A DNA stretch of 64,000 nucleotides from Hemiscyllium ocellatum (GCF_020745735.1 NC_083453.1:15755849-15819848); one strand, 5' to 3'; shown: positions 4,929-54,578, counted from the first letter of the stretch. Numbers and translations are program-made. The notes: generated by a model not told the origin, from the letters alone.

Positions 4929-5387
4929 TTACTTGCACACGTTGACCCACTCGCTCACCCTGCACTCATCGCACAACACATAGCAACACCAATGGAACCG
5001 GCAGTGGCACCGCTCACTGCGGCTCTGCTTCAAGATGTTGTGCCCTCTCCCACAGCATAAGCTGTCACAGTTGTCCATCCCCTGGCTTGTCTTATTGCAG
5101 ACCCTTCCCCGTGTGCCTGGAGAGTCCGTGCCAAGGTCCTTCTCACAGAAATCAGGAGATTTCTCAAAGTACACCATGTCCTTGTAAATCCTCTTCCTGC
5201 TGGGCTTCAGGCTGAACTGGCCTGTGTTTTTATTGTGCGTTTTGATGAAGACCGCGTTCTGGAATCGCTCCTTCAACACAGCCCCGACCCGTCGAAAATC
5301 AGGGGTCACCTGCCAGCAAGTTTTAAACTGGCAACTGCCGGAGGTGCCGTGACATTTACACTTGCGTTTCATGTTGTCAATCACTGC
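4929..5387 (-). CDS. wnt10b: Wnt10b last coding exon ([25 protein letters not shown]...EWVNVCK*); full CDS 1152 nt, 383 aa
   Basis: ORF 4929..5498. Lipidation motif [10 protein letters not shown] and Cys-rich C-terminus [23 protein letters not shown] as in WNT10B. cag acceptor at 5390-5388, TAA stop at 4931-4929. Confidence 0.96.
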
Positions 5388-5667
5388 CTGAAATTCAGAA
5401 GAAAAGCAATCAAACAGAAAGAGCAAAGGAAGGACTAGAGCAATGAACAGACTGACTAACCCCTCTCCATCACCCTCTGAATACAACACACAAATCAAAG
5501 GGAATGATCTGATAGGACCCCTGTTATCAGATGCTAGTCTATCCTTGCCTGGAGCAGTCCAATCTATGACATACTTGTAAATCTCTGGCAGTCCTGCTCA
5601 TAGATAGCTGGGAGGGCAGAGATGTGAGTGGGGGAGAGGTGCTTCTTCACTGGAAAAATGAGAAAGC

Positions 5668-5930
5668 AAAGAAAGACTTGCATTTACATAGCGCCTTTTT
5701 TTCCTCCAGGGCATCCCAAACGTGCTTTATGCTAATGAGGCCCTTATCGAGCTGTGAACACCATGGCAAGGTTGGAAGTGCAGCAGCCAATTTGCGCACA
5801 GCAAGCTCTCGAAAGCGGCAATGCGATCAGATAATCTGCTTTTGTGATACTGATTAAGAAATAAAACATTGGCCAGGACACCAGAAAGAATACCCCCTCT
5901 CTTCTTCCAAAAGATTGCAGTAGAATCCCT
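5668..5930 (-). mobile_element. Deu-type SINE (SacSINE1/AmnSINE1-like) 3' half
   Basis: acttgcatttacatagcgcc...gcagccaatttgcgcacagcaagct...cattggccaggacacc matches my recollection of the DeuSINE 3' region. Confidence 0.6.
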
Positions 5931-6669
5931 TCCAAAAATAAAAGGAAAATGCTAGGAATACGGAAATGTGCAGCAGCATATCTGCACCCATCATGGAAAA
6001 AGCAGGAAAAGACCTCAGGTTTGCTGCTCTCTCTTTTCTGCCTTCTCACTATCTGCAAGTTGATCTGTTTCTGTGCTGTATGACTCAAAGTTCAAAATGA
6101 CTATGTCTATGATCGAGGACCAACTAAGAACAGTATGCATCATTTACAGCCTCACCCAGAGATTTTAATGGGCTCGGGACATTTCAGTTTCCAATTTCAG
6201 GGGTATAATATATTCCTAGCAGATCTGCGACATTGCTCACAGTGGTTCCTACTGTATTGCTCTCATTCTGTGCGTCTGATTTCTCTGTGCAACTTGACTC
6301 ACAGTCGATGTTTCACTTTCAGTTAATTTGTTGCCGCTTGTGATAGTTGTACCTTGTGATAATTTATCTGTATTCCTGTGCTGCAATTTGTGTGCATATG
6401 TAAGTTTACCAGAAGATGTATGAGGGGATGCCATGATATGTGTTGAATGATATTTGTTGTAATGAATCTTTGTTTGTTGTTGTAAACCATTTCAGTGTCT
6501 GTTTTGTTTCATCAGTCAATGAGTGCAACATTGGGAACTGCTGGCTTTGTTTTCTCAAAGGATTCTGCATTTCTAGTGGGATGCATTGCTGATTTGTTAC
6601 ATAAAAGACTACTCATGTCCACCTCTGTAATATAGCTCAACTTTGTTGCTGCCTCAGCTCATCAAAACC

Positions 6670-7430
6670 AGCAGAAATAGGAACATTTGGCCCCTTGAGC
6701 CTCTCTGCCATTCAATAGGAGCATGGCTGATGCACCATTCTTCATGTTCACTTTCCAGCCCTTTCCCCATAACCCTTGACTCCCTGACTGATCAAGGATC
6801 TACCCATCTCAGCCTTAAATATACACAAGAGCTCTGCCCCAATAGCTCGCTGTGACGTGCAGTTCTGAAGACTCATAAGCCTCTGAGAGAAGAAATTCCT
6901 TTCATCTCGGTCTTAAATTGGTTCCCCTTTATGTTGAGACTATGCTGTCTGGTCCTCGAGTCTCCCATGAGGGGAAATATCCTCTTAGCATTTACCCTGT
7001 TAAGCCCCTTAGGAATCCTGTATATTTCAATGAGATTACCTCTCATTATTCTAAATTCCAATGAGAGTCCCAACCTGTTTAGCCTTTGCTCATAAGGCAG
7101 TCCCTCCATACTGAGGATCATCAAAGTGAGCCCTCTTTGAACTGCCTCCAATGAAATGATATCTTTTCTTAAATAAGAGGACCAAAACTGCTCTCAATAC
7201 TCCAGATATGGTCTCACCAGCACCTTGTACAGTTGCAGTAAGACTTACCTACCATTATACTCCAACCCCCTTGAAATAAAACTAACAGTCCATTAGTCTT
7301 CCTGCTTACCTGCTGCCCCTGTGGGTTAGCTTTCTGTGTTTTGTGTACAAGTACACCTCAAGTTTTCTTGTGTTACAGCTTTCTGCTTTTTTTACCATTT
7401 AAATAATATTCTTTTCTTTTACTGTCCCTT
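6670..7430 (-). mobile_element. CR1 LINE 3' fragment
   Basis: ORF 6873..7151 (AVQR...GLPYEQRLNRLGL.SLEFR.MRGNLIE). Confidence 0.85.
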
Positions 7431-8328
7431 CAAAGTAAATTGTGACGTAGGATAACCTGCAAATGGCCGAGAAGGATTCCAGATAACCCCCCCCTCAGTT
7501 GCTAAAAAGCAAGCTTACAATTAATTGATGGCACAGTATCTGGGATGGAAGATGAGATCAATGGTGAAGATGGAAAGCAATTGTGGCCATTGGGCACCAG
7601 CATTGGCAAAAATGGTGGTAATGCGAGACAAGTTCGTCTGGAAGCAGAGCAGAGGCAAGCACACACACAAGATAATGTTCATGAAGAGTGGGGTGGAAAT
7701 GGAAAAAAAATTAGATGAAAGGCAGATTATTTAGGAGATTAAGAATATTGAAAACGAGGCCAAAATCAAGACCTTACTGGGACCAAATTGAAGGGAAACT
7801 CAAAATGATTGGAAAGTCAGCAAGATATTAAGATTTAAATTTTAAAAAGTGAAAAAGAAAGTTATCAAATGCACACACAGTAGAGAGAGTTCTATAGGAG
7901 CACTGAGAATAAATCAACAGGATTCCAAGACACTGTGACAAGCAAGTGAGGCCTAACATTGAGATTCCTGCTATAGTGCCACCCACTATCTTCACAGTAA
8001 ATGTGGTCGTCTTAAAGTGAGAATTCTCACAGGAAGTGTTTACATAGCAGCTTCCAATGGAATGTGCATCTGGTTTTGACATAGATAGATATAATGAATA
8101 ATGAAGGCAAGAGTGTGGGGGGCTAAATGGCTTCCTACCATTCTCTATTATTTATTATGCACTAAAATTGCAGAAATGGGCCTTCAGTTCTCAATTCATA
8201 TCACATTTTAAATGATCATTGGGAAAGACTTGAATAGTTTAAGAAAAAGGTCTGTCACCAGATATAGAAGGACTATCTTGATGCTGGCTGAAAGACTTAA
8301 CAAAATTTATGAATGAAACTCTTCATAA

Positions 8329-8644
8329 GGGCGGCACGGTGGTACAGTGGTTAGCACTGCTGCCTCACAGCGCCAGGGACCTGGGTTCAATTCCCACCTC
8401 AGGCGACTGACTGTGTGGAGTTTGCACGTTCTCCCCATGTCTGCGTGGATTTCCTCCGGGTGCTCCGGTTTCCTCCCACAGTCACAAAGATGTGCGGGTC
8501 AGGTGAATTGGCCATGCTAAATTGCCCGTAGTGTTAGGTAAGGGGTATATGTAGGGGTATGGGTGGGTTGCGCTTCGGCGGGTCGGTGTGGACTTGTTGG
8601 GCCGAAGGGCCTGTTTCCACACTGTAAGTAATCTAATCTAATCT
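8329..8644 (+). mobile_element. HE1-like V-SINE, full length
   Basis: tRNA-like head (gtggttagcac...gggttcaattcc), V-domain tgtgtggagtttgcacgttctcccc, CR1-like tail gggccgaagggcctgtttccacactgta plus (aatct)n. Confidence 0.85.
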
Positions 8645-10065
8645 TCAGAAATTGAAATGTCGTACATGGAGAGACATTACTCATTGTGATAGTTGTGTGT
8701 GTGTCCTCCTGGGCCCTATTATCTCACATCTGCCTGGTTTCAGTTTAATTGAGTGTGTGAAACTTTTCCTCAAATTACTGGTGTTAAGAAATTGAGGATG
8801 AGTGAAATCAGTCAGAAAGAGCAGGGATTTCCTGATCAACTTCCTGCATGCACTGAAAATGGATTCTTCCTATGTTGAAGAATTAAATGATACATTTAAA
8901 GCAGAAAGTTGCCAAATCAGTAAAGACTGCAATATAGATTCCAGTCAGACATAATCCTAATCACAGAAGACAGCCTACTATTGTCAGATGGTTAGTAAAG
9001 GTAAGAGGTGGGGCAACTAGCAGTAATTTTAAAAAAAAACTAATTAAAAGCAGACAGTGTCTTCAAACCAAAACCAAAACTTGCCAATTTCAGCCAATAT
9101 TCTGCCATGGTCACACAGGCATCTTTACACTCCTGTGCCAAAGCATGAGTGTTCCAACTAGTCACCATATTGGCACTGTGTGCCCATGCATTCAGCTCAT
9201 TGGCATACTCAGCTTATTCAAACATGCTTTCAGGACAACATGGATGTATAAATTGTTAAGGATTTATGTTAATAATCGCTACATTTCATCTGTGCTAGCA
9301 TATAAACTACAGCCACTTCTATCCACCATCCTGATCTTCATGCCCTTGGGAAACAGGTTTGGCTGAGGATTTAACATCTCTCATAAGATGGCTCTGTTGG
9401 ATTGTTGAAATGACCAGCAAAGCAAGGCCCAAGACAGATTTTTTATTTTGAAAAGCAGATACTTATCCCCCTTTTTTTCAGATTGCATAACTCTCGTCTT
9501 TGGTTTAGCATTTGTGTCTTGTGAACACGAGCAGTTGTTGCCTGGATCACAGCCCAAACTATAATTAGCGACACTGGCTCAATCGAGATTCAGGCATTTC
9601 ACTCTCAACTAGGACGGACAGCACTTCCCCAAACCTGGTTTACAACCCTTCACCGCCAGCCTGAGGGACTCAACTGCTAATGCTACAAACATCGGCGGCC
9701 TTCCTTTCTGATTTAAAGACAAACAGATGACAATTCAGCAGGCACAGGTACAATTCCCCCGGAGATAAGATAATTGAGCGCCGCTCATATGCTCTTTGGC
9801 GCCGCTAACATGCTGATTGGCGCTGTTTAACACTCAGCTACAAGTCGGAGCAGCTTTTCTTTAGAACTAGTGGGATATTGGTTGCTGTAGAACTGAAATC
9901 CTCCAAAATTCTCAGATCATATTACCGAGATAGAATTAGAACATTTTAAACTGACCTTCCTTTCATCCCAGAGTATACTAAAGATCAATTTCACTGACAG
10001 ATTCTGGACAAAACGACGGGCACCAGACTGACCAATGAATGGTCCAGACACACAGATGTGTTTAC

Positions 10066-10430
10066 CTGTCTTCCCAGCTTGTTGTTGTGCAGTCTCATTC
10101 TCCCATGGATGTCTCTCGAGGTTTCCCGGGAGTCCAGAAAGTCCCTGGAGAACTTCTCCCCGAATTCGATGTCATGGTTGCAGTCCCCCCGCTCCCAGGA
10201 GTCCTGGAGGCCGGGGTAACGCTGTTCGGGCTCGAGGATCGAGACTGGGATGCCCTGGGTCAGGGCCTGCACCCGGAGCTGGTGGAGCTTGAAGCGCAGG
10301 TTCTGGTCGTCTTCCCTCCGCTTGAGGTCGCAGCCGCAGCCACGGAGCTTCCCCAGGCTACAGGCTGTCGCTACCGAGTGGGTCACCCCCGCGGCCAGCA
10401 GCGAAAACATGAAGGCGCTTTCCCGAAAAC
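10066..10430 (-). CDS. wnt10b: Wnt10b coding exon 3 ([28 protein letters not shown]...[14 protein letters not shown]...HNNKLGRQ)
   Basis: Overlaps ORF 9991..10410. cag acceptor at 10433-10431, gtaaa donor at 10065. CNHD and [14 protein letters not shown] are WNT10B-type. Confidence 0.95.
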
Positions 10431-15734: not shown

Positions 15735-16235
15735 AAATCACACAACACCAGGTTATATCACACAACACCAGGTTATATCACACAACACCAGGTTATATCA
15801 CACAACAACAGGTTATATCACACACCGGGTTATATCACACAACACCAGGTTATATCACACAACAACAGGTTATATCACACAACAACAGGTTATATCACAC
15901 AACACCAGGTTTATTTGGAAGCATTAGCTTTCTGAGCGCTGCTCCTTCATCAGGGGGTTGTGGAACAGGACCATAAGGCCCAGAATTTACAGCAAAAAAT
16001 TCCAGTGTCAGCCAACTGAAACGATATATTGAACAAATCTAGGTTCAACAGGCTTGTTCAATATATCATTTCAGCTGCATGACGCTGTAATCTTTTGCTG
16101 TAAATTCTGTGTCTTATGGTCCTGTTCCACAACCCCCTGATGAAGGAAAGTGCTCAGAAAGCTAGTGCTTCCAAATAAACCTGTTGGACTATAACCTGGT
16201 GTTGTGTGGAGTCCAACACCGGCTCCACAGCATCA
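15735..16235. mobile_element. Two inverted Penelope-like element ends forming a foldback, each with a hammerhead-like core
   Basis: Arms 15906-16036 and 16054-16183 are imperfect reverse complements. CTGATGA...GAAAGCTA cores at 16137-16164 (+) and 15953-15925 (-). Same family as 47510-47745. Confidence 0.7.
15738..15910. repeat. 20-bp tandem array (TCACACAACACCAGGTTATA), about 9 units
   Basis: Read directly: eight units (one shortened to 17 nt) plus a partial ninth, no spacers. Confidence 0.95.
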
Positions 16236-17035: not shown

Positions 17036-17298
17036 CTCTGCTCAGGATGACCGTGTCCTGCAGGACCTTGCCCCCGTTCTCCAGAGTCGAACAGTTCCAC
17101 CGCTGGTCCCAGAGTTGATGCTGACACTCGTGAATAGCGACTTGGATTCCCTGCACGGCGGCGGCGGTCACATCAGGGCTCCGGACACACAGGCCCAGCT
17201 GGCGCTTGCTGAGACCCGGCAGGGTCAGGCACACTGCGTTGGCCGTCAGGATGGGCTCCAGGGGAATCTTCAAGCCCAGAATCTCGTTCCCGGCCACC
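17036..17298 (-). CDS. wnt10b: Wnt10b coding exon 2 ([12 protein letters not shown]...CVRSPDV...[14 protein letters not shown]...ILSRG)
   Basis: Within ORF 16986..17321. cag acceptor and gtaag donor. NEILGLK, ANxVCLTL and [10 protein letters not shown] closely match WNT10B. Confidence 0.95.
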
Positions 17299-17457: not shown

Positions 17458-17522
17458 CCGGACAGTGTGAGTGAGATGGCGAGGAGGAGAGGGACGGGTC
17501 TGGAGATTCTTGGAGCAGCCAT
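17458..17522 (-). CDS. wnt10b: Wnt10b coding exon 1 (signal peptide MAAPRISRPVPLLLAISLTLSG)
   Basis: ATG at 17522-17520, hydrophobic signal-like peptide, GT donor (gtaaga) at 17457. Phase 2 joins correctly to exon 2. Not in the ORF track; read by hand. Confidence 0.85.
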
Positions 17523-17770: not shown

Positions 17771-17801
<31 letters not shown>

Positions 17802-21559: not shown

Positions 21560-22205
21560 AGTCATAGAGATGTACAGCATGGAAACAGACCCTTCGGTCC
21601 AACTCCCCCATGCCGACCAGATATCCCAACCCAATCTAGTCCCACCTGCCAGCATCCAGTCCTTATCCCTCCAAACCCTTCCCATTCATATACCCATCCA
21701 GATGCCTTTTAAATGTTGCAATTGTACCAGCATCCACCACTTCCTCTGGCAGCTCATTCCATACACGTACCACTCTCTGTGTGAAAACGTTGCCCCTGAG
21801 GTCTCTTTTATATCTTTCCCCTCTCACCCTAAACCTATGCCCTCTAGTTCTAGACCCACCCCCAGGGAAAATACTTTGTCTATTTACCCTATCTATGCCC
21901 CTCATGATTTTAGAAACCTCTATAAGGTCACCCCTCAGCCTCCGACGCTCCAGGGAAAACAGCCCCAGCCTGTTCAGCCTCTCCCTGTAGCTCAAATCCT
22001 CCAACCCTGGCAACATCCTTGTAAATCTTTTCTGAACCCTTTCAAGTTTCACAACATATTTCCGATAGGAAGGAGACCAGAATTGCACACCATATTCCAA
22101 AAGTGGCCTAACCAATGTCCTGTACAGCTGCAACATGACCTCCCAACTCCTGTACTCAATACTCTGACCAATAAAGAAAAGCATACCAAACGCCTCCTTC
22201 ACTAT
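21560..22205 (-). mobile_element. CR1 LINE 3' fragment (young)
   Basis: C-terminal part of ORF 21663..22403 (YRTLVRPLLEYGVQFWSP...TRGHRF...FKRHLD). Confidence 0.9.
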
Positions 22206-22209
22206 GAGC

Positions 22210-22342
22210 CTCGCTCCTGATGAGGGGCTTATGCCCGAAACGTCGACTCTCCTGCTCCTCGGATGGTGCCTGACCTGCTGTGCTTTTCCAGCACCACACT
22301 CTCGACTCTGATCTTCAGCATCTGCAGTCCTCACTTTCTCCC
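22210..22342 (+). mobile_element. Penelope-like 3' end with intact hammerhead core
   Basis: ctgatgaggggcttatgcccgaaacgtcgactctcctgctcctcggatg...ccagcaccacac...agcatctgcagtcctcactttctcc. Confidence 0.75.
22213..22248 (+). ncRNA. Minimal (PLE-type) hammerhead ribozyme motif
   Basis: CUGAUGA (22217-22223), stem II GGGC-UUAU-GCCC, GAAA (22237-22240), palindromic ACGU mini helix III, GUC cleavage triplet (22242-22244). Stem I is weak. Confidence 0.6.
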
Positions 22343-23009
22343 TGTAATCCATCTTGCCCAATTTCCACGCAACATTCGGGAGAAGTGTGGAACGTGGAGC
22401 CAATCCATCGCGAAACTACAAGAGCTTATAGGTTTTTACTAACTTGAAAGGTGTTCGTGCAGATGAACGCGGATCAGTTTATACACCCCATGCACTTCCA
22501 CAGGCTTCTCTACACAGATGCGAACACATGACCAATACATACAATGAAACGCCATACCAGCCTATAAACACCCCAGAGACAGCCACATATCCCACACCCC
22601 ATTATCCGTCTCCGGTATACGCTTACCCACCCCCTACCCCCATTCATTCTCTTCCCGTCCAGCTTCCCCAGTCTACCTCCCCTAACCCCCTCCCTTACAT
22701 CTCCCACATACACGTAACCTATCCCGTACAGCTCTATGTGTTGAGAGTTCTAAGGCTGAGCGTTGAAGAGACTAACACTTCCACACCCAGTGGAAACCAT
22801 TTCCAACCAGTATTATTTTCTAAGTTTCTTGGGTTGCCCCCAGGTGCAGGCGATGGAAATTCCCCAGCAACTGACAGCCATCAGCGGGATAAGCTCTGAG
22901 CCAACAAGTTGTGAAGGTAACGCGTTTGCAAATGATTTCAGTTCTGTAATATCCTGCCGTTGCTCCGAGTTCAGTGTGTTGTCAGACGTGCTTTGGGATC
23001 ACAAGTGGG

Positions 23010-24213: not shown

Positions 24214-26885
24214 CCACAAATCTATGGCACTGAATGACATAGGGTCGGATGATGTGGAGTCTGTGTGGGTGGAATTGAGGAACCACAAAGGCAAAAAAAA
24301 ACATAATGGGAGTTGTGTACAGACCTCCTAACAGTGGTCAGGACCAGGGGCGCAACATGTACCGGGAAATAGAGAAGGCATGTCAGAAAGGCAAGATCAC
24401 GGTGATCATGGGGGACTTCAATATGCAAGTGGACTGGGTAAATAATGTTGCCAGTGGATCCAAAGAAAGGGAATTCTTGGAATGCTTACAGGATGGCTTT
24501 TTGGAACAGCTTGTCATGGAGCCCACAAGGGAGCAGGCTATTTTGGACCTAGTGCTATGTAATGAACCAGACTTTATAAAAGATCTTAAAGTAAGGGAAC
24601 ACTTAGGAAGCAGCGATCATAATATGGTAGAGTTCAGTCGGCGGTTTGAAAGAGAGAAGGCAAAATTCAATGTAATGGTGTTGCAGTTAAACAAAGGTAA
24701 TTATGAGGGCATGAGAGAGGAAATGACGAAAATCGACTGGAAGCAGAGCCTAGCAGGGAAGACAGTAGAGCAAAAATGGCAGGAATTTGTGGGTATAATT
24801 GAGGACACAGTACAGAGGTTCATCTTCAAGAAAAGAAAGATTATCCGGGGAGGGATTAGACAGCCATGGCTGACAAAGGAAGTCAGGAAATGTATCAAAG
24901 AAAAAGAGAGATCCTATAAAGTGGCCAAGAGCCTGGGAAATCAGAAGATTGGGAAGGCTACAAAAACAAACAGAGGATAACAAAGAAAGAAATAAGGAAG
25001 GAGAGGATCAAATATGAAGATAGGCTAGCCAGTAATATTAGAAATGATAGTAAAAGTTTCTCTCTATACATAAGAAACAAATGACGGGTAAAAGTAGACA
25101 TTGGGCCACTGCAAACTGATGCTGGAAGGCTAGTGATGGGAGATAAGGAAATAGCTGGAGAACGTAATAAGTACTTTGCGTCAGTCTTCACAGTGGAAGA
25201 CATGAGTAATATCCCAACAATTAAAGGGAGTCGGGGGCTGAGTTGAGTATGGTTGCCATTACAAAAGAGATAGTGCTAGAAAAGCTAAAAGGTCTTAAAA
25301 TTGGCAAATCTCCTGGCCCCGATGGGCTATATCCTAGAGTTCTGAGGAAGGTGGCTGAGGAAATAGTGGAGCGTTGGTTGAGATCTTTCAAAAGTCACGG
25401 GAGTCAGGGAAAGTCCTGGATGATTGGAAGACCGCTGTTGTAACCCCATTGTTCAAGAAAGGATCAAGATAAAAGATGGAAAATTATAGGCCAATTAGCC
25501 TAACCTCAGTTGTTGGTAAAATTCTAGAATCCATCGTTAAGGATGAGGTTTCTAAATTCTTGGAAGAGCAGGGTCAGATTAGAACAAATCAACATGGATT
25601 TAGTAAGGGGATGTCATGCCTGACAAACCTGTTAGAATTCTTTGAAGAGGTGACAAATAGGTTAGATCAGGGAAACCCAGTGGATGTGGTCTATCTAGAC
25701 TTCCAAAAGGCCTTTGATAAGGTGCCGCACAGAAGGTTGCTGAGTAAGGTGAGGGCCCATGGTGTTCGAGGTGAGCTACTGGCATGGATTCAGGATTGGC
25801 TGTCTGACAGAAGGCAGAGAGTTGGGATAAGAGGTTCTTTTTCAGAATGGCAGCCAGTGACAAGCGGTGTCCCACAGGGTTCAGTGTTGGGGCCACAGCT
25901 GTTCACATTATATATTAATGATCTGGATGAAGGGACTGGGGGCATTCTAGCGAAGTTTGCCGATGATACGAAGATAGGTGGATAGGCAGGTAGTACTGAG
26001 GAAGTGGGGAGGTTGCAGAAGGATCTAGACAATTTGGGAGAGTGGTCCAGGAAATGGCTGATGAAGTTCAATGTGAGCAAATGCGAGGTCTTGCACTTTG
26101 GAAAAAAGAATACAAGCATGGACTACTTTCTAAATGGAGAGAAAATTCGTCAAGGCAAAGTACAAAGGGATCTGGGCGTGCTAGTCGAGGATTCTCTAAA
26201 GGTAAACATGCAGGTTGAATCTGTGATTAAGACAGCGAATGCAATGTTGTCATTTATCTCAACAGGGTTGGAATATAAAATCAGCGATGTGCTACTGAGA
26301 CTTTATAAAGCTCTGGTTAGGCCCCATTTGGAGTACTGTGTCCAGTTTTGGTCCCCACACCTCAAGAGGGACATACTGGCACTGGAACGTGTCCAGCGGA
26401 GATTCACACAGATGATCCCTGGAATGGTAGGTCTAACATACGAGGAATGGCTGAGGATCCTGGGATTGTATTCATTGGAGTTTAGAAGATTAAGGGGAGA
26501 TCTAATAGAAACTTACAAGATAATACATGGCTTGGAAAGGGTGGACGCTAAGAAATTGTTTCCGTTAGGCAAGGAGACTAGGACCCGTGGGCACAGCCTT
26601 AGAATTAGAGGGGGTCAATTCAGAACAGAAATGCGGAGACATTTCTTCAGCCAGAGAGTGGTGGGCCTGTGGAATTCGTTGCTGCAGAGTGCAGTGGAGG
26701 CCGGGACGTTAAATGTCTTCAAGGCAGAGATTGATAAATTCTTGATGTCACAAGGAATTAAGGGCTACGGGGAGAATGCGGGTAAGTGGAGTGGAAATGC
26801 CCATCAGCCATGATTGAATGGCGGAGTGCACTCGATGGGCCGAATGACCTTACTTCCGCTCCTATGTCTTATAGTCTTATGGTCT
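24214..26885 (+). mobile_element. CR1-clade LINE, 5'-truncated; ORF2 (APE C-terminal part and RT) broken by a few stops/frameshifts
   Basis: ORFs 24306..24980 (GVVYRPP, MGDFN, SDHN), 25476..25985 ([25 protein letters not shown]) and 26004..26813. (tcttatg)n tail; 7-bp direct repeat tatatca at both ends. Confidence 0.93.
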
Positions 26886-28314: not shown

Positions 28315-28776
28315 CTACATGCAGATGCTGAGTTCTTTTCGGACAGCGCATTGTCTGCACTGCACCACACAGCACCAATGGAAGCGACATTGGCAGTTTT
28401 CCTGGAAGCTCACTGTCTCCTCCCGGTGCCCCCGGCCACAGCACAGGAGATCACAGCCACTGACATCCATAGCTGTGCCATTGCACACCCTGCCCCGCGT
28501 CCCTGGAGAACCAGTGCGCCTGTTGGGGAGGCAGAAATCGGGGGACTCGGCAGAGTAAATCAGGTCCTGTTTATCTGGCTGTTTGATGTTGTGCCCCACT
28601 GGGATCAATGTCTTCCCATCATTGCCGCCCATCACCTTGAAGGCGCCATTGAAGCGGTCCAGTAGGCGGTCGCCAACCTCGCGGAAATGGGGCATTTTCT
28701 TCCAGCAAGTCTTAACAGCACAGGAGCCGGACAGGCCATGACATTTACACTCAGTTCGCATGTAATTCTTAATCAT
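28315..28776 (-). CDS. wnt6: Wnt6-family last coding exon (MIKNYMRTECKCHGLSGSC...RKELSICM*); full CDS 1062 nt, 353 aa
   Basis: ORF 28315..28845. RTECKCHGLSGSC and CRFHWCCVVQC..RKELS match Wnt6. cag acceptor at 28779-28777, TAG stop. Confidence 0.95.
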   Translation of the reverse strand: MIKNYMRTECKCHGLSGSCAVKTCWKKMPHFREVGDRLLDRFNGAFKVMGGNDGKTLIPVGHNIKQPDKQDLIYSAESPDFCLPNRRTGSPGTRGRVCNGTAMDVSGCDLLCCGRGHREETVSFQENCQCRFHWCCVVQCRQCAVRKELSICM

Positions 28777-37079: not shown

Positions 37080-37381
37080 CAAGCGCCCAGCCTCGTTATT
37101 GTGCAGGTTAATCAAGGATTTGATGTCGTTCTGTCCTTGCTTCTTCTCGGCATCCATGAACTGCTTGGACTTGGCGTAGCTGAACTCCACGTCATCTCCA
37201 CATCCGCCCCACTCCCAGGCTGTGGCCTCAGTGCCAGGAGTAGGCGAGCGGGGCAGTGGCACCCGGTTCAGGGTGCGCTCACACCCGCACTGCAGCAGCT
37301 CGCCCATGCTGCAGGCCTGGCTCACCGTGTAGAGTACCCCAGCCGAGGTGACAGCAGAAACGAAGGCAGTCTCCCTGATAT
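37080..37381 (-). CDS. wnt6: Wnt6-family coding exon 3 (IRETAFV...QACSMGELLQCGC...WEWGGCGDDV...LHNNEAGRL)
   Basis: ORF 37017..37439. Polypyrimidine tract plus cag acceptor, gtaggt donor. Wnt6 signature QACSMGELLQCGC. Confidence 0.95.
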
Positions 37382-39400: not shown

Positions 39401-39621
39401 CTTGTTGCAGGATCTTGCTGAAGTATTTCTTGTGAGTGGTGCAGTTCCACTTGCGGAATCGGAACTGGTGCTGGCATTCCCGGATCCCAAGGCGGGCTCC
39501 CTTCGCCACCTCGCTGACGATCTCCGGTTGAGTCTGACACAGTTCAGCCTGCCTGCCTGCCAGCCGCTTGGCTTTCCTGCAGATGCTGTTGGGATCCATG
39601 ACCAAGGGGCTTCCTACCGCC
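39401..39621 (-). CDS. wnt6: Wnt6-family coding exon 2 (AVGSPLVMDPNSICRKAKRLAGRQAELC...ILQQD)
   Basis: Overlaps ORF 39372..39605. cag acceptor, gtagag donor. WWAVGSPLVMDP is diagnostic of Wnt6. Confidence 0.95.
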
Positions 39622-39679: not shown

Positions 39680-41474
39680 CCACACACATTTCACTGACAC
39701 ACTCATTCACTAACACATATTTACCCTAATCCACATTCACTCACACACAGAAACACACGCTAACGCACTGGCATTCACAAACACGCTCACTGACACGTTC
39801 ACATTCACTCACACAGACTGACACACATTCACTGACAAACACACACATTGATACACACATATGTACTCACATTCACATGCATCACACTGACACTGACACT
39901 AACATTCTAACTCACTAACACATTGATACACACTACCATCACTGATGCACTCACTGATACCAGTGACACTCGCACACTGACACATACTCATACAGCTGGA
40001 CACACAGACTGACACATACACAAACACACACTGATACATACATTTATACAGACACGCACTAACATATACATTCAGGCTCATACTCTCCGTCTCATACTGA
40101 CACTCACGCACAGTCTCACACAATCAGTGGCATTCACACACATGCACAAACTGACAAATACCCACTTACACAAACACGCATACACTTACTGACACACACT
40201 CATGCACTGACTCTCACTCAGAACACAAACCCATTGACTTCATTCACATTCATTCATAGGCACACTCCCATGAACTCTCAGTCATACACTGACACACAGA
40301 GTCACACTCTTAACACACCCAAACACAATCACTGAAACACACACTGATGGAAACATTCATGCAGACATACACTCACTGACACACATATTAACACATATAT
40401 TTATACAGAAACACACATTCACAGACATACAATACCAAACAGTGACACACACATGCATACACACACTCAATGGCACATACATTCATACAGACACACACTG
40501 ACACACTCACTCATAAACATGCACATTCATACAGATACACCCTCACTGACACACACACTGACTCCCACTGACACATACACCCACACTCACATTGACACGC
40601 CCCCCCCACCCCACAGACACATACTGGCGCACACATACACTGACCACCTCCAAAACACACACTGACACACATTCGCGCACACTCACACTGAGACTTGCAT
40701 ATTCACAAACCGATATATTCACCCACACTCACAAACAAATTCATGCAGTGACGCGGGCAAACATCCCCCTCTCTTATATTCACTCACACACACTCCCATA
40801 AATACTCAGACATGTCTAGTGAAACACATACACACACATTCACTCAGTGGGACTCATACTGTCACTACTACACACACACACGCACAGATGTACTCACACT
40901 ACATGCACAATTTCACACACCGACACCTACACCCACAACCAGCCACACTCTAACTCTCCCTCTCTCATACTGACAAATACTGATACTCATGCACTCTCGC
41001 ACACACAGATACACACTCTCACTCACAGACACAAACCCACTGACTTCACTCACACTCATTCGCATACTCCCATAAACTCTCACAGGCACATATTGACACA
41101 CATAGTTGCACTCTACTACACTCAAACTTACATATTGACACACACACACACTTCTACCCAATCTCTCACGCACAGATTCTCACACACGCACTCAGATTCT
41201 CACAATCTCGCTAATGTGCAGATATACTCCCTTGTACACTCATACACATACACGTTCAAAACCAGACACTCGCATTCTCACACAAACGCACATTCAGAGA
41301 TACACTCTCACAGTCAGGCATACTCTCTCACACACTCACATTTTCACATAAACACACACTTACAGAAACACACAGACAAACTCGGAGACACACTCTCTCA
41401 CACAAGCACACTGTCGGAGGCCCACACGTTCACACATTCTCACACAAACATACTCTCGGAAACACACACACACA

Positions 41475-41528
<54 letters not shown>

Positions 41529-41575
41529 TGGAGACACACACTCTCACACACTCATTCATGTTCTCAGGCACACAT
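39680..41575. repeat. Degenerate (CA)n-rich low-complexity tract in wnt6 intron 1
   Basis: Visible directly; source of spurious His/Thr ORFs. Confidence 0.9.
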
Positions 41576-41924
41576 GCACCAGTTGAGTTTTCAGAGGAGT
41601 TGTGCCACAACCGCGGTTGAAGTGTACAAGAAAACGCAACTGATTGAACTCCGAGGCAATTTGTACAGGAATGAGACAAATTCCTCGCAAGTACACAGAG
41701 CGTGATGAATAAACGGCGAGGAGTTAGGAATCCGACTGATGAAGTGGTTCTGCTATTTGTGCGCTCGTTCGCTTCGAAACAGCGGGCCCTGAGCCAGGGA
41801 AAGAGCAACTATCTGGGATTTCCCAGATACAGGTGCTGTTTGCAAATGAGAGTAAGCAAAGGCTGTCAACACAATGGAGCCCCTGCACCCTCACAGTTCT
41901 CACCCTCACTGCTCCACTCTCCAG

Positions 41925-42475
41925 TGCACTCTCTCTCTCCTCAATCTCTCTGTTATATTCTCTCCTCACTTTCTCCATCATCCTCCCTCCTTACTTTCTC
42001 TATTATCCTCTCTCAATACTCCTTCTATTACCGCCCCTTCTCATTCCCTCTATCATATTCTCTCCTCACTCCCTCTATCATCCTTTCTTCACATTTACTC
42101 TATCACACCGTCTTCTTAATCACTATCTCCGCTCTTCTCTCTCTCCCCACACCCTCTTCCCCCATCTTGTTCTCTGCCCTCTCACTCCCTCATACCTCTC
42201 TCCCATTCTCTCTCTCTCTCTCCCATTCTCTCTCCCCTCCTGTCTCTCTACTCCCTCTTCTCCGCCCCGTTCTTCCCTCCTTATCCCTCCTCTCTGGCCT
42301 CTTTCACTGGTCTCTATCTCCCCTCTTCCCTCTCTTGCCCCCCCTTGCACTTTCTTCCCTCTTTCTCCGCTCCCCACTGTACTCTTTTCCCCTCTCTCCC
42401 TCTTTCTCATCTGCTCCTGTCCCTGACTCACTCTCTGCTCTCTCCCCTCGCTCTCTCCTGCTTTCCGCCTCTGCC
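41925..42475. repeat. (CT)n-rich polypyrimidine low-complexity tract in wnt6 intron 1
   Basis: Visible directly. Confidence 0.85.
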
Positions 42476-42621
42476 TTCTGAAAACACCACTGCCTCCTCG
42501 GTTACAAGTTCCCTCAAGCCACCCCCCCCCCCCTCCTCCACCCTCCTCACCCCCACCACCAGCCCGAACAACGCCTTGTCCGACAAGTATCCTCCGGAGC
42601 CCGAGACCCGACCCGACTCAC

Positions 42622-42698
42622 CACCACAGGCTGATGATGTTGGCGGGGTACAGAAGACAGAAGAAAACTCGGAGCTGAGCTGCAGCGAAAGGCCACAT
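42622..42698 (-). CDS. wnt6: Wnt6-family coding exon 1 (MWPFAAAQLRVFFCLLYPANIISLWW)
   Basis: ATG at 42698-42696, signal peptide ending in LWW, gtgagt donor at 42621. Phase 2 fits exon 2. Confidence 0.9.
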
Positions 42699-43785: not shown

Positions 43786-44586
43786 TAAGACCATAAGACA
43801 TAGGAGTGGAAGTAAGGCCATTCGGCCCATCGAGTCCACTCCGCCATTCAATCATGGCTGTGTATTTCAACTCCACTTACCCGCATTCTCCCCGTAGCCC
43901 TTAATTCCTTGTGACATCAAGAATTTATCAATCTCTGCCTTGAAGACATTTAGCGTCCCGGCCTCCACTGCAATCTGCGGCAATGAATTCCACAGGCCCA
44001 CCACTCTCTGGCTGAAGAAATGTCTCTGTGTTTCTGTTCTGAATTGACCCCCTCTAATTCTAAGGCTGCGTCCACGGGTCCTAGTCTCCTCGCCTAACAG
44101 AAACAATTTCCTAGCGTCCACCCTTTCCAAGCCATGTATTATCTTGTAAGTTTCTATTAAATCTCCCCTTAATCTTCTAAACTCCAATGAGTACATCCCA
44201 GGATCATCACCCGTTCCTCGTATGCTAGACCAACCATTCCAGGGATCATCCTGTGAATCTCTGCTGGACACTCTCCAGTGCCAGTATGTCCTTCCTGAGG
44301 TGTGGGGACCAAAACTGGACACAGTATCCTAAATGGGGCCTAGCCAGAACTTTATAAAGTCTCAGTAGCACAACGGTGCTTTTATATTCCAACCCTCTTG
44401 AGATAAATGACAACATTGCATTCGCTTTCTTAATCACGGACTCAACCTGCATGTTTACCTTTAGAGAATCCTCGACTAGCACGCCCAGATCCCTTTGTAC
44501 TTTGGCTTGACGAATTTTCTCACCGCTTAGAAAGTAGTCCATGCTTGTATTCTTTTTTCCAAAGTGCAAGACCTCGCATTTGCTCA
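43786..44586 (-). mobile_element. CR1 LINE 3' fragment, same subfamily as 24214-26885
   Basis: ORFs 44246..44668 and 43867..44322 are nearly identical to 26004..26813. Flanking ggtct repeat. Confidence 0.92.
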
Positions 44587-44719
44587 GGTCTGTGTTCTGA
44601 CTCCGAGGTAGGGACACTATTACCATACTATGCTGCAAGAAGTCCAAAGCGATTACAATTGTATGCAATAGTCCATAAAGATGAGAATTGCGACTGAGCT
44701 AGCAGCACCCATCCATTCG

Positions 44720-47875: not shown

Positions 47876-49108
47876 CCAACTGCATTGAAATAGTGGCCGC
47901 CATGGATGATGTTATAGCATTGATAATTCGCACCGTTTCCAAACGATGGTGGCTGCTCCGGACGCCTTGACATTGATACCATCTTTAGTACATGAAAGGA
48001 CGCGACAGGAGCCGTTTTCACAGCGTGCCCAGCAGTTCCACCTTCAGGTAATTTCCCAGTTTTTAGGGGGTGCGGTGGGGGTTGGGGGAGCGGTTTAATA
48101 AAACGGAAAATTGAGAGTTTAAAACGTTGAAGGGAGACTGGAGAAACAATGAAAGTCGCTGCCACATAACATTGGAGAAAATCCTAGAAACCAACCCAAA
48201 ATCAATGATTCCCTGATTCCAGGGTTGGCAGGAGGGGTGTTCTTGTGGTACAGTGGTAGTGTACATACCTCTGAAGCAGGTGGGGTTTGAACCCAGACTT
48301 CCTGATCCAGAGGTGTGTTATACCATCTCTGAACGGGGTGGTTAGAACATATTTAAAATGTTGACCAGTTTATCAAGTGGGCGATTATATTTCGATGTCT
48401 ATTCTAGTCTCTTCAGCTGCTGTGCCGTGATATTATGGGACTGAGGGAGAGGAATAGATTCTCGGCTTGTTTGTCACTGCGCAACACACACACTCAGAGG
48501 CTTGAAAGCAAGCTGGCTGGGTCCGTGACAGCTCCCAACAAACTCACGGTCACCTTCAGCAAATTTCACTTTGCAAGCGAAAGGAAAACGAAATCAAGAG
48601 CAAACCGCGACGGAGGCGTCAGGAGCGGTTTCAGTGCAGGGCTCCGGGCGTCCCTCGCCGCGAGTGTGTGTGTGTGTGTGTGTGTGTGAGCCGCAGGTTT
48701 GGAAAAAAAAGCGACTTCAAGGAGCACCGCGAGAAGAGAGTGGTCCCCGCGAATGAGACAGCATCACTGTTCGCTTGACAGAAATGCCGACCCCTGCGAG
48801 GCAAGGAGTGAGGCCATTTGCTGGAGAATTGCGGACACGTTCCTCCACACAGTAGCGGCTGGTTGACCGTCCCGGAAAGGACTTGAACAATCAGATTCGC
48901 TGGCTTCCATGGGCATTCAACCGCCTGAATGGGCTGTCTTCCAGCGGGCCGAATGATAGACACTTTGATGGACAGCTCTCGGCTCGGATCGCGCAGGCGA
49001 TAGGGGAAGAATGTGCCCCCTTTCCTGCCATTGTTCCTCTAAACTGGGAGGTTTGTCCGCCACTTACACCCCCCCCCCACCCCCAAATAAAAGCTCGTCC
49101 TACAAACT

Positions 49109-49114
49109 TATAAG
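49109..49114 (+). promoter_or_regulatory. Candidate TATA box (TATAAG) of wnt1
   Basis: About 250 bp upstream of the wnt1 ATG, downstream of a CpG-rich stretch (approx. 48600-49000). Position only, no expression data. Confidence 0.4.
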
Positions 49115-49363
49115 AAGGCAGCAAATCCCGTGATGAAACTTCTGTGATCAGGGCACCCTGCACTCATTGGCGAAGGCTAGACCTGGGTGCACACAAATTT
49201 GCCATCTTTTTCACAATCGAATTCGTGTCTGTGCTGGGCGGGGGTGGGGGAGTGGGGTGGGGGGGGGGTGGGGGGGGTGGTAAAAGGAGGCGACAACCTC
49301 AAGCCCCACAGAAACACTCCTTCTTGTTTGGTTGTGAATGATCGTTCCTGCTCGAACAGCAGC

Positions 49364-49455
49364 ATGACATTAGTTCTGGGACTGAAGACTCTGTGGCTTT
49401 TGGCGTTCGGCTCCCTTTCCAACACGCTGGCGGTTAATAACAGTGGGAGATGGTG
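49364..49455 (+). CDS. wnt1: Wnt1 coding exon 1 ([31 protein letters not shown])
   Basis: ATG at 49364 (A at -3), signal peptide, Wnt1-specific AVNNSGRWW, gtaagt donor at 49456. Confidence 0.92.
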
Positions 49456-49668
49456 GTAAGTTTCAACCCCCCCCCCCCCAACTCCCGCCCCTACCCCCCT
49501 CCCCTCGAACATAAGCCCGAATATGTGTCTTTAACAGATGAAAGAGCCCGCCAGCAGCAGGGACAGGTGCAAGGGCAGTTCTATCAATGCCGTCCGAGTA
49601 GTGGGTCTATTTCTGTGCACCATTCTCCAAAATTGCACGTTTTGTTATTTTGTTTGTGTGTGTTTCAG

Positions 49669-49922
49669 GGGCATTGTAAACATTGCTTCCTCCTCCAACT
49701 TGCTGACCGACTCCAAGTACGTCCAGCTGGTTTTGGACCCGAGCCTACAGCTGCTGAGTCGAAAGCAACGGAAACTGATTCGCCAGAACCCGGGCATTCT
49801 GCACAGCATCACCGGGGGAGTGCAGTCCGCCATCAGGGAGTGCAAGTGGCAATTCCGCAACCGACGCTGGAACTGTCCAACCAGCCAGAGCTCCAACATC
49901 TTTGGCAAAATCGTTAACCGAG
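49669..49922 (+). CDS. wnt1: Wnt1 coding exon 2 ([16 protein letters not shown]...[18 protein letters not shown]...FGKIVNRG)
   Basis: ORF 49538..49951. tttcag acceptor, gtagg donor. Near-identical to vertebrate Wnt1. Confidence 0.96.
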
Positions 49923-51009
49923 GTAGGCTCGGCCAGGCCAGGGGCACCTAGGCCACTTTCAAATCGGTGCCTCCCAGCTCAAGTGTAGCCCAGTCCAGGT
50001 CCAGATGGCGAAATAGGCCCGTTGACCCATCAGATTGGGCCCATGTGCAGACATAGAACAAACAAAAAGCCTCACGAGGTTCCCTGTATAGTGTTGGTCA
50101 GTTCCGACCTGAAATCAGCCGACCCAAGGTGGATTGGACTGAAAGGCCATGGAACACAGTGTCCCGGGCCCATTCCCGGCCAAGTTAGCCTATTCCCCCC
50201 CCCCCCCCCCCCCCCCCGCAGAACAGCCTGCCCAAGCAAAGGTATCGGACTGCGGCAGCAGGTTACTAGGCCGGCTGGGATTGAGGAATCAAACTCTTCA
50301 CCACAGGCCGAGATTCTTCATAAGGAGAATCTCCCCCTCCCCTCACACACACTCGCACAAAGGTCAGTCTATTGTTGTCTCACTGAGTATTTACTAGGCC
50401 AGCATCTTCATTGGGCTGAATGGCAGCATTAAGCCGGTCTGCGCTCCGGTAGCCATCCCTCTCTGTCCTGACACTATCTCAGCTGCCGGCCGAAGGTTGG
50501 GAATTTGCACGGTGTTAACTCGATGACAGGATCTGATAACCATTGCGTGCTGAATGTTCACGTTAGGGACCGGCGTTACTAACCTTGATCTCGCTTGGGG
50601 CTGAATGGTTCCACCAGTTTCAATGCTGATGTGCAGCTCATTCGAGACCATTCTATCAGTCCTTGCCGATGTCCAGTTTGTTTCTTTTAGATGCTCCTCC
50701 AGTGAATTAGTTCTCGTCCTCATTCCCTACGTTTAACGATTTTAACTAACAGTATTTTTTCTTACTCGCCGATGTTCTGATGCTTTCTGCGGTGGTTCTG
50801 GCTTTTGTGTGCACCTTTCTCTCTCTGTCTTTCCCTATTTCCTTTGGACACATCTCCCCGCCCTGCCACACCGCCTCTCTGTTCGCTCTCATTATCTCGA
50901 ATTCGCTGTACACATGACTCTCGCTGTGTTTACTCAACAGTTCGACGTACCGCCGTGTCGTCCGCATGTCTTCATCGCTCTAATAGATTCTTCGCATTTG
51001 ATGTGGAGT

Positions 51010-53920
51010 GAATGTCTGAGCGAGTGAGTGAATGGGTGTGTACGTAAGTATATAAGTGACTGTATGTGAGAGAGCATGAGGGTATGTGAGCGTCTGAGAC
51101 AAAGGGGGTCCGTTTGCGTGAGTGTGTATATCTACGCGTGAGTGTGCGTATCTGTGTGTGTGTGTGTATATCTATGTGAGAGAAAGTGCGTGTGAAAGAG
51201 AGTGGGTGACTGTGTATGCGTGAAAGAGTATGTTGAATGACTGTGCGTGAGTGAGAGTTAAGCGAGAGTGTATGAATGAGTGCATGACCATTGCCTCCCC
51301 GATATGACAGAGTGTCTATATGCATGTGAAAGAAAGAAAGATTGTGGAATGAACGCATTGGTAAGTGTATGTGTGTGACAGAATGTGTGCATATGCGTGT
51401 GAGAGAGTGAGTGTGTGAATGTGAGAGAGATTAAGTGTGTGTGTGAATGAACTTGTGTTTGAAAGAATGTGTTTGTGCGAATGTGTGTCAGAAAGCAAGA
51501 ATGAGCTTGTGTGAATGTGTGTGTATGAATGTGTGAATGTTCGTGAGATTGAGTATGAGAATGTATGTATGTGAGTGCGTGTGTGTGAATGTAGGTGAGA
51601 ATATGAGTGAATGTGTGCTTATGAGAGTGTGTGTGAATGTGCATGAGAGACAGAATGAGTGTGTGAGATACTGTGTGTGAATGTTTATAGGTGTGTGCAC
51701 AAATTTGTGTGTGAGAGAGACAATGAGTGTGTGAATGTGTGTATGAGCATGTGAATGTGCATGTGTGAATGAGTGTGGGGAAATGAATGTATGTGTGTAA
51801 CTGTGTGTTTGAATGTGTGAGAGTGTGTGTGAGACTGAGCATGTGAATGCGTGCATAAAAGTGTGTGAATGTGTGTGAGACAGTAGGTATGAATGCGCAT
51901 GAGAGATTGAGTGTGTCAATGTGTGTGTGTGTCAGAGACTGTGGATGGGTGTGAAACTGAGCAAATCAATATGTGCATGGGTGTGTATGTATGCATGAGA
52001 GGGTGTGAGTGGGTCAGCGTGTGTGTGATTGTGTGTTTATAGGTGTGTATGTGCAAATGCATGTTTGCATGAATGTGCACGTGTGTAAATGTGTTTGTGT
52101 GAATGAGTGCCTGACTAAGTGCATGACTGTGTGTGAGAATGTGCACAGTATTTGATTGTGAGAGTGTGTGTGAATAGGTGTGAAACTGCGCATGTGTGCT
52201 TGTGCGTGTGCATGACTGGATGTGTGTTTAAATGTGTGTTTGAATGTTTGAGAAAATGTGTGAATGTGTCTGAGGCTGAACATGTGAATGTGCACGTGAG
52301 AGAGCATGTGTGAATGTGCATGGGAGAGAGCGTGCGTGAATGTGCACATGAGAGTGTGTGTGTGTGCACATGAGTGTGTGCGAGAATGTGCACATGAGAC
52401 AGCATGTGTGAATGTGCACGAGAGAGCGTGTGAATGTGCATGAGAGAGCGTGTGAATGTGCACGAGAGTGTGTGTGAATGCATGCACGTTAGAGAGCATG
52501 TGTGAATGTGCACATGAGAGAGCGTGTGTGAATGTGCACGAGTGTGTGAATGCATGCACATGGGAGAGCGTGTGTGAATGCACGAGACAGCGTGTGAGAA
52601 TGTGCATGAGAGAGCGTGTGTGAATGTGCACATGAGAGAGCATGCATGAATGTGCACGAGTGTGTGTGAATGCGTGCACATGGGAGAGCATGCGTGAATG
52701 TGCACATGAGAGAGCGTGTGAGAATGTGCACAAGAGCATGTGTGAATGTGCACATGAGAGAGCGTGTGAGAATGTGCACAAGAGCATGTGTGAATGTGCA
52801 CATGAGAGAGCGTGTGAGAATGTGCACAAGAGCATGTGTGAATGTGCACATGAGAGAGCGTGTGAGAATGTGCACAAGAGCATGTGTGAATGTGCACATG
52901 AGAGAGCGTGAGTGAATGTGCACGTGAGAGGGCATGTGTGAATGTGCACAAGTGTGTGTGAATGCATGCACATGGGAGAGCGGGTGTGAATGTGCACATG
53001 AGAGAGCGTGTGTGAATGTACACGAGAGTGTGTGTGTGAATGTGTGCACGTGAGAGAGCATGTGTGAATGTGCACGTGAGAGAGCCTGTAAGAATGTACA
53101 CGTGAGAGAGCGTGTAAGAATGTGTGTGAATGCACGTACATGAGAGAGAGTGTGTGAGAGGATGGTCGGGTATAAGTGAATGCGTGTTTATGTGCATGTG
53201 TGTTTGTGAACGTGTGCTTGTATCAATGTGTGTGTGTAAGAGAGACAGAATGTGCTTGTGTGAATGTGTGCCTTAGCTAGTATATGGGTGTGTGGGTGAG
53301 AGATGGACCACATGAATGTGTGTGAGAGTGAACATGAGTGTTTGAGATAGTGTGTGTGAGAGTGAGTGCATGAGAAAGTGTGAGACAATATATGTGTGAA
53401 TGCAAGCGAGTGTGCGTGTTAGTGTGAGAGAATGTATGAATGTGTGAGAGTGTTTGAACGTAAGTGTGAGGGAGTGAATCTACAATGTGAGTGAGAGTGT
53501 GTGTGAATGTGTGTGCGAATACATGTGACAGAGTGTGTGAATGTATGAGAGACTGCAACAGAGTGAGTGTGAGAGAAGAGATGTGTTTGTGGGAGTGTGT
53601 GTGAATGTGTGTGAGACACTGAGTGTCTGTGTCTGTGTGAATGTGTCTGTGTGTGAGAATGTGTTTGAATGTTTGAGGAAGTGCGTGGGAATATTTGAGA
53701 CTCTGAGCATGTGGATGTGCACACGTGTGTCTGAGAGAGTATGTGTTCGAATATGTGTGTGTGAGTATGTGAATGAGAGACCGAGCATGTGAATAGGCGC
53801 ATGAAAGAATATGCGAAGAGATGCGTGTTATGTGAGAGATTGTGTGTGGGGATGAGCGTGTACAAGTGAATACCTGTTTGAAGGTGTGTGTGTGTGTGTG
53901 TGAATGTAGGTGTGTGTGTT
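51010..53920. repeat. Degenerate (GT)n-rich tract in wnt1 intron 2, with an embedded 24/48-bp minisatellite
   Basis: Visible directly. A perfect 48-bp unit repeats about 4.5 times at 52694-52910. Confidence 0.9.
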
Positions 53921-54312
53921 CCGCTCTCTCTCGCACATGTAGTATCTCATGCTCCCCATCCCTGTGTGTCTTTTGTTTTTGTTTTGCTATCTAAGTCTCC
54001 AAATCTCAGTCTCTCACTCTATATCTTTACGCCCATGTCTCCCCCTGTGCCCTTCCTTCTCGGTCCCTCTCTTTCGGGCTGAGGGTGTTTCTGTGGGAAT
54101 CTGCTTCAATTCCTCTCTCTCTCTCTCTGCTTCTGCACTAGGGTCTGTACCGCTCCTTCTATTCCTTCGGAGGAGCGGCTTGGCTCTGCGATGCGTGGTT
54201 ACCGGGAGGGGTGGGGTTGGGGGGAGTCTCTCTCTCTCTCTCTCTCCGGTGTCTGGATCTCTCGGTCTCTGTCCCTCCCTCTGAATTCTTTCCCGGTTTC
54301 TTGTCCCCGCAG

Positions 54313-54578
54313 GTTGCAGAGAAACCGCTTTTATCTTCGCCCTGACCAGCGCGGCGGTAACGCATTCCGTGTCCCGCTCCTGCTCCGAAGGCTCCATTGA
54401 GTCGTGTACCTGCGACTACCGGCGGCGGGGACCGGGCGGGACCGACTGGCATTGGGGCGGCTGCAGCGACAACATCGACTTCGGCCGCGTCTTCGGCCGC
54501 GAGTTCGTGGACTCAAGCGAAAGGGGCCGGGATCTGCGCTATCTGACCAACCTGCACAATAACGAGGCGGGCAGACTG
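54313..54578 (+). CDS. wnt1: Wnt1 coding exon 3 ([10 protein letters not shown]...[34 protein letters not shown]...LHNNEAGRL); exon 4 lies beyond the window
   Basis: Overlaps ORF 54369..54674. cgcag acceptor at 54312, gtaat donor at 54579. Confidence 0.96.

Follow-up and report, generated by a model that had tools for sequence, protein, structure and literature searches.

The stretch of DNA studied here, 64,000 nt from the epaulette shark Hemiscyllium ocellatum (GCF_020745735.1 NC_083453.1:15755849-15819848; hereafter the window), very probably represents the wnt10b-Wnt6b-wnt1 locus of this species, in which the middle gene, Wnt6b, is the Wnt6 ohnologue that was kept with the wnt10b/wnt1 block and is likely a working gene. 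That a second, whole-genome-duplication copy of Wnt6 lies at this position had been proposed in an earlier, sequence-only reading of the window, and is supported by the two Wnt6 loci of the chimaera Callorhinchus, by the recurrence of the same triplet, by the best phylogenetic tree, and by the identity of the adjacent Wnt10 gene as a Wnt10b. It is above all synteny that speaks for an ohnologue, since there are two blocks in each of which a Wnt6 stands beside a Wnt10, and the tree agrees with it; phylogeny alone is not decisive. As the gene is already annotated and already named in the literature, this is a correct rediscovery and not a new find.

The Wnt6b gene and its neighbours

A six-frame motif scan, together with a list of open reading frames (ORFs), located 11 Wnt exons in three groups, arranged as <-wnt10b <-wnt6 wnt1->. 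The 64-kb window is free of N runs (0 found), and gene models were assembled by hand from reading frames and splice signals. All junctions are GT-AG and the frames are open throughout wnt10b, Wnt6b and exons 1-3 of wnt1, while every Wnt piece of the window matches Pfam PF00110 (wnt). NCBIfam, a library for naming prokaryotic proteins, gave no match. The initial claim of three Wnt genes with intact frames and canonical splice sites thus holds for wnt10b and Wnt6b, which are both complete, and for wnt1 as far as its first three exons. The Wnt6b exons are as follows:

Wnt6b exon 1: 42622-42698, minus strand; ATG, hydrophobic N-terminus ending ...IISLWW, split Trp codon
Wnt6b exon 2: 39401-39621, minus strand; acceptor, frame and junctions; 100% identity to XP_060676907.1 residues 27-99 (tblastn)
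Wnt6b exon 3: 37080-37381, minus strand; GT-AG; WEWGGC and HNNEAGR; 99% identity to XP_060676907.1 residues 100-201 (tblastn)
Wnt6b exon 4: 28315-28776, minus strand, including the stop codon; CHGLSGSC acylation motif; 100% identity to XP_060676907.1 residues 201-353

Joined together, these four minus-strand exons encode 353 residues, exactly the length given by the sequence-only reading, and the product is identical (100%) over its full length to XP_060676907.1, the NCBI entry "protein Wnt-6-like [Hemiscyllium ocellatum]". This answers the question, left open in that reading, of whether the gene had been annotated. Exon 1 is the sole ATG-to-GTGAGT candidate in the right phase with a ...SLWW end. 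Another candidate for this exon, at 46774-46695, is signal-peptide-like, but similar peptides recur in ORFs of the window, which makes it look like a repeat; moreover, it would yield 354 residues and not 353, and 42622-42698 was preferred.

The Wnt6b protein matches PF00110 over its full length (E=6.1e-117, profile positions 2-304 of 305). It contains 25 cysteines and fills 24 of the 25 conserved Cys columns, as many as are filled in Heterodontus Wnt6b and in Latimeria. Furthermore, the CHGLSGSC motif (CHGxSGSC, carrying the acylated serine) starts at residue 212, and two N-glycosylation sequons are present. The best matches in two database searches with Wnt6 queries were all named Wnt-6 or Wnt-6-like.

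In the public annotation, the Wnt6 gene is located on a 23.6-Mb contig of GCA_020745735.1 and has a 353-aa product. Its annotated neighbours are both wnt genes: one, with a 366-aa product, lies 6.7 kb upstream on the opposite strand, the other 8.7 kb downstream on the same strand. This is the layout of our models on the same contig, and as such the arrangement first read from the sequence is borne out by both. Wnt6b occupies a slot with wnt1 on the divergent side and wnt10b in tandem, and the Wnt10 gene is truly of the 10b type, as had been claimed: in a tree of 35 Wnt10 proteins, the window gene falls inside Wnt10b (100/99), in a chondrichthyan Wnt10b group (100/99). The same tree shows that a separate Wnt10a is present in sharks.

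Wnt6 loci in other vertebrates

Callorhinchus possesses two distinct Wnt6 genes, 'Wnt-6' and a partial 'Wnt-6-like', at separate loci. The first of these loci, on MU249837.1, comprises Wnt-6 (XP_007906706.2) and, on the same strand and 8.8 kb further downstream, a wnt gene with a 385-aa product, the first exon of which ends in ...LCVHR, as in shark Wnt10a (...FCLHR|VW) and unlike Wnt10b. The second, on MU249857.1, has wnt1 in the opposite orientation, with exons that share 70-94% identity with those of the window, then the last Wnt6-like exon, and then wnt10b (87% in exon 2). This last Wnt6-like exon is 90% identical to the window gene, compared to 79% to the Wnt-6 of Callorhinchus itself.

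The complete triplet is seen in Heterodontus, with a 366-aa wnt on the opposite strand, a 353-aa Wnt6-like and a 383-aa Wnt-10b. In Stegostoma the wnt1 and Wnt6-like side of the triplet is seen, and in Pristis the Wnt6-like and wnt10b side. The window gene is the same gene as the chondrichthyan Wnt6b, called 'Wnt-6-like' by NCBI (97% identity to Rhincodon XP_020380219.1), with the same neighbours in Heterodontus, Stegostoma, Pristis and Callorhinchus. No difference was found, and only exon coordinates and independent checks are added here.

Human WNT10B and WNT1 are adjacent, without a Wnt6 between them, and the sequence-only reading had reasoned that the shark locus minus wnt6 would equal this mammalian layout. 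Gar does show such a wnt1/wnt10b pair: the two genes lie head-to-head, 8.3 kb apart, and no Wnt6 exon was detected between them at E<=0.01. For the Latimeria Wnt-6-like (XP_005986305.1, H3BIA9), no genomic position was found in the contig index; H3BIA9 and H3BIB0, the latter a Latimeria Wnt10b by tree, have consecutive accessions, which is a weak hint only. In Pygocentrus, no other gene is found within 10 kb of wnt6, which spans 65 kb.

Phylogeny of Wnt6

A maximum likelihood tree of 57 Wnt6 proteins was inferred under LG+C20 with a careful search, using invertebrate Wnt6 as the outgroup. Vertebrate Wnt6 forms a clade with a support of 100/100, and the window protein lies inside it. One clade within (87/96) unites all elasmobranch Wnt6-like proteins with the Wnt6-like proteins of Callorhinchus and Latimeria, and in a second, canonical clade (81/83) Callorhinchus Wnt-6 is sister to amphibian, amniote and teleost Wnt6. 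The window gene is thus placed apart from ordinary Wnt6. At 90% identity, the window protein clusters with the Wnt-6-like of Chiloscyllium, Rhincodon and Stegostoma and with the partial protein of Callorhinchus; the Amblyraja protein named 'Wnt-6' groups with Rhinoraja Wnt6-like. This two-clade pattern is the one expected of a duplication before the split of cartilaginous and bony vertebrates, with a signal that is modest. Lamprey and hagfish have two Wnt6 each, a 'Wnt-6' and a fast-evolving 'Wnt-6-like', all of which group in a single cyclostome clade (100/97) that lies outside either of the gnathostome ones.

Like the shark gene, teleost wnt6a and wnt6b (the zebrafish names) belong to the Wnt6 subfamily, and the name 'wnt6b' is identical. 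In the tree, however, teleost Wnt6 of the conserved and of the divergent type pair as sisters (85/82) within the canonical clade; they do not join the shark gene and are not in one-to-one orthology with it. Judging from this placement, teleost wnt6b and shark Wnt6b are probably not orthologues, in spite of the shared name, and the teleost types look like copies of ordinary Wnt6 that arose by duplication within teleosts.

Selection and likely function of Wnt6b

Over 351 codons, Wnt6b differs from its Stegostoma counterpart at 15 amino acids and 59 nucleotides, which corresponds to a nonsynonymous rate (dN) of 0.023, a synonymous rate (dS) of 0.17-0.20 and a dN/dS of 0.11-0.14. Since intron 3 is approximately 80% identical between Hemiscyllium and Stegostoma, this dS lies in the neutral range. 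The comparison with the sawfish Pristis yields a dN/dS of 0.06 at a dS close to saturation; against Callorhinchus dS is saturated, and the ratio is not quoted. The gene is clearly under purifying selection, with a dN/dS of 0.06-0.14 against Stegostoma and Pristis. Because of this selection, Wnt6b is most likely a working signalling gene, and the initial description of it as probably functional agrees with how it looks from intact frames, motifs and dN/dS. Going by family membership, its product would be an ordinary secreted, lipid-modified Wnt ligand.

Origin of Wnt6b

How could a Wnt6 have come to lie between wnt10b and wnt1 in sharks? In the history that we favour, an ancestral Wnt1-Wnt6-Wnt10 cluster would have been copied in the early vertebrate genome duplications. 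Wnt6b would be the Wnt6 copy that stayed with the wnt10b/wnt1 block, the sister block having given rise to Wnt6-Wnt10a. Subsequently, cartilaginous fishes would have retained it, as the coelacanth apparently did too, and ray-finned fishes would have lost it by deletion from its place between wnt1 and wnt10b.

Several observations weigh against this history. Sharks alone do not show the Wnt6 paralogy, and the case rests on the chimaera, of which the current assembly has only the last Wnt6-like exon, adjoining a 25-N gap. The database lists for approximately 20 elasmobranch species contain no ordinary Wnt6 protein, only the Wnt6-like type. As for the tree, the support for both gnathostome Wnt6 clades is moderate only, and Latimeria Wnt6-like is a long branch. 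In the approximately unbiased (AU) test, placing the coelacanth gene with the other bony-vertebrate Wnt6 costs 7.4 log-likelihood units (p-AU 0.259) and forcing a single chondrichthyan Wnt6 clade costs 13.7 (p-AU 0.134), and neither arrangement is rejected. The missing Callorhinchus exons are most simply seen as an assembly matter, because of the 25-N gap and because an older Wnt6-like protein model of this species, A0A4W3HQZ5 (229 aa), includes exon 3. The gap probably also explains the 148-aa Wnt6-like fragment of NCBI. It spans positions 9768-9792 of the extracted MU249857.1 locus, directly upstream of the Wnt6-like exon.

The single chondrichthyan clade is what would be expected if Wnt6 had been duplicated only within cartilaginous fishes, with one copy inserted in, or left at, the position between wnt1 and wnt10b and lacking any counterpart in other lineages. 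Such a history fits the outcome of the AU test and the short branches at the base of both Wnt6 clades, but we consider it unlikely. In the best tree the coelacanth Wnt-6-like joins the shark genes at 87/96, and a later copy would have needed to take exactly the ancestral Wnt1-Wnt6-Wnt10 slot. Furthermore, in Callorhinchus, Wnt-6 lies beside Wnt10a and Wnt6-like beside Wnt10b, and since Wnt10a and Wnt10b are old paralogues common to sharks and bony vertebrates, the Wnt6-Wnt10 blocks look as if they were duplicated whole. Marlétaz et al. 2023 likewise class wnt6b as a retained ohnologue (PMC10115646).

A single gnathostome Wnt6 lineage, in which the shark gene is a plain orthologue of tetrapod WNT6 that was moved by translocation in one lineage, would account for the similarity of the shark protein to bird, frog and teleost Wnt6 (77-79% identity, nearly the 83% shared with other shark orders). 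It would also account for the failure to find a second Wnt6 in any elasmobranch in the database lists, or a Wnt6 exon within 10 kb upstream of Stegostoma wnt10a, a short flank only. We regard this as very unlikely, and as already contradicted by Callorhinchus, which has two distinct Wnt6 genes at both expected loci and a last Wnt6-like exon closer to the window gene than to its own Wnt-6; moreover, the Wnt6 tree splits the two groups. Finally, that the order of genes stems from an assembly misjoin, or that the middle gene is an unexpressed relic, is hardly credible, given that the same order and orientation occur in at least four other independent assemblies, that all frames and splice sites are intact, that dN/dS is as low as reported above, and that skate expression is mentioned in PMC10115646.

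Under the favoured origin as an ohnologue, the sequence-only reading had expected a second wnt6 beside wnt10a. This is where it did not stand up for elasmobranchs, where no such gene was found in the database lists or in the 10-kb Stegostoma flank; it is present only in the chimaera Callorhinchus. Within 10 kb of wnt10a of Chiloscyllium (82 kb) and of Stegostoma (67 kb), no other gene was called. We lean towards the view that elasmobranchs lost the ordinary Wnt6 upstream of wnt10a and have Wnt6b as their only Wnt6, with chimaeras keeping both genes and most bony vertebrates only the other copy.

The wnt10b and wnt1 genes and the non-coding content of the window

The wnt10b model consists of four exons on the minus strand:

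wnt10b exon 1: 17458-17522, minus strand; ATG, signal-peptide-like N-terminus, GTAAGA donor in the correct phase
wnt10b exon 2: 17036-17298, minus strand; GT-AG; Pfam wnt; 93% to Heterodontus Wnt-10b
wnt10b exon 3: 10066-10430, minus strand; GT-AG; Pfam wnt, E=1.6e-24; WERGDC replaces the usual WxWGGC
wnt10b exon 4: 4929-5387, minus strand, including the stop codon; AG acceptor; Pfam wnt positions 153-305, E=6e-60; 94% to Heterodontus Wnt-10b

The predicted protein has 383 residues and is 91% identical to Heterodontus Wnt-10b. The public wnt10b model is longer, with 476 residues and a coding start inferred at approximately 19614, some 2 kb upstream of the ATG at 17522. We take the 383-aa form as the conserved one, because Heterodontus Wnt-10b equals its length, and the 476-aa form may be over-extended or an alternative 5' model.

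The WERGDC motif, at 10180-10197 of the window, is also found in Heterodontus Wnt-10b, while the motif reads WEWGDC in Callorhinchus and WEWSDC in Rhinoraja. WEWGGC is retained in shark Wnt10a and in the Wnt10b of bony vertebrates, the coelacanth having WEWSGC. The Gly-to-Asp change looks common to chondrichthyan Wnt10b, and the Trp-to-Arg change looks shared by at least two shark orders. Since the variant recurs in Heterodontus, WERGDC is neither an error nor a sign of decay. Intron 2 of wnt10b contains a 20-bp tandem repeat of approximately nine copies at 15737-15911.

Three exons of wnt1 lie on the plus strand of the window:

wnt1 exon 1: 49364-49455, plus strand; ATG to ...NNSGRW, GTAAGT donor; the start agrees with the inferred start of the annotated neighbour
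wnt1 exon 2: 49669-49922, plus strand; GT-AG; Pfam wnt; 89% to the wnt1 of Callorhinchus, 99% to that of Stegostoma
wnt1 exon 3: 54313-54578, plus strand; GT-AG; Pfam wnt, E=5e-30; 94% to Callorhinchus wnt1

On the plus strand from 54668 to the end of the window at 64000, neither a CKCHG motif nor a tblastn match for a fourth exon was found; the last, CKCHG-bearing exon of wnt1 falls past base 64000, outside the window.

The non-coding part of the window holds remains of retroelements of the LINE (long interspersed nuclear element) type at 24306-26813 on the plus strand, between wnt10b and Wnt6b, and at 57129-58310 on the minus strand, in wnt1 intron 3. Among these LINE-type ORFs, one matches an endonuclease profile (PF14529) and another a reverse transcriptase profile (PF00078), and related ORFs resembling reverse transcriptase tails occur at approximately 21663-22403, 43867-44668 and 56173-56742. 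Long TG/CA-rich tracts of low complexity, which appear as 'CVCV' or 'HTHT' ORFs, are located at approximately 39700-42500 in Wnt6b intron 1 and at 51000-54300 in wnt1 intron 2, and include a 26-bp tandem repeat with approximately 34 copies in an array at 52283-53124.

Relation to known Wnt genes and clusters

The canonical vertebrate WNT6, located in human at 2q35 upstream of WNT10A, resembles Wnt6b in many respects. Both belong to the Wnt6 subfamily and have four exons, a ...LWWAVGSPLVMDP mature-protein start, the same cysteine set and the same acylation motif. Both are also located upstream of a Wnt10 gene in tandem, which bears out the earlier remark that wnt6 and wnt10b share the geometry of WNT6 and WNT10A. 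They differ in that Wnt6b adjoins Wnt10b and wnt1 and not Wnt10a, and in that the best tree places it in a different clade. At the level of residues, a comparison of four Wnt6b with four canonical Wnt6 sequences revealed few fixed differences, at window residues 117, 137, 201, 202 and 300.

Wnt1-Wnt6-Wnt10 is the ancestral invertebrate order, as in wg-Wnt6-Wnt10 of Drosophila. Sharing this gene order, with Wnt6 between the other two, the shark locus is the closest vertebrate state to this invertebrate and early-chordate cluster. Unlike that cluster, it is one of two duplicated vertebrate copies; the comparison made here is one of gene order. For amphioxus and lamprey, the order Wnt9-Wnt1-Wnt6 has been reported (PMC6060547).

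In the skate study of Marlétaz et al. 2023 (PMC10115646), wnt6b appears among the retained ancestral ohnologues and is called "previously characterized". Of the retained ohnologues named there, among which is wnt6b, some are expressed distinctly across stages and organs of the skate; the supplements of that paper make no mention of wnt6b. The passages found in the supplements of Somorjai et al. 2018 do not list the Wnt6 genes of C. milii. In addition, a preprint (bioRxiv 10.1101/2025.03.13.642935) gives Wnt1, Wnt6b and Wnt10b among the genes common to the X chromosomes of five elasmobranch species, and confirms the registered X of the epaulette shark. With the gene annotated and named in the literature, our analysis adds little as a discovery.

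What the locus does offer is a clean example of an ancient cluster of signalling genes that is whole in sharks and broken in mammals. According to the 2025 preprint, Wnt6b lies together with wnt1 and wnt10b on an old elasmobranch X chromosome. It also illustrates how genome duplication, followed by differing losses, can leave one gene name on genes that are not orthologous. If elasmobranchs did lose the ordinary Wnt6, shark 'Wnt6' and tetrapod 'WNT6' would be hidden paralogues resulting from reciprocal loss. To compare the expression or function of Wnt6 in a shark with that in a tetrapod would then be to set different genes side by side. This matters for inferring ancestral Wnt signalling from sharks, as it is the 6b copy that sharks have, perhaps as their sole Wnt6.

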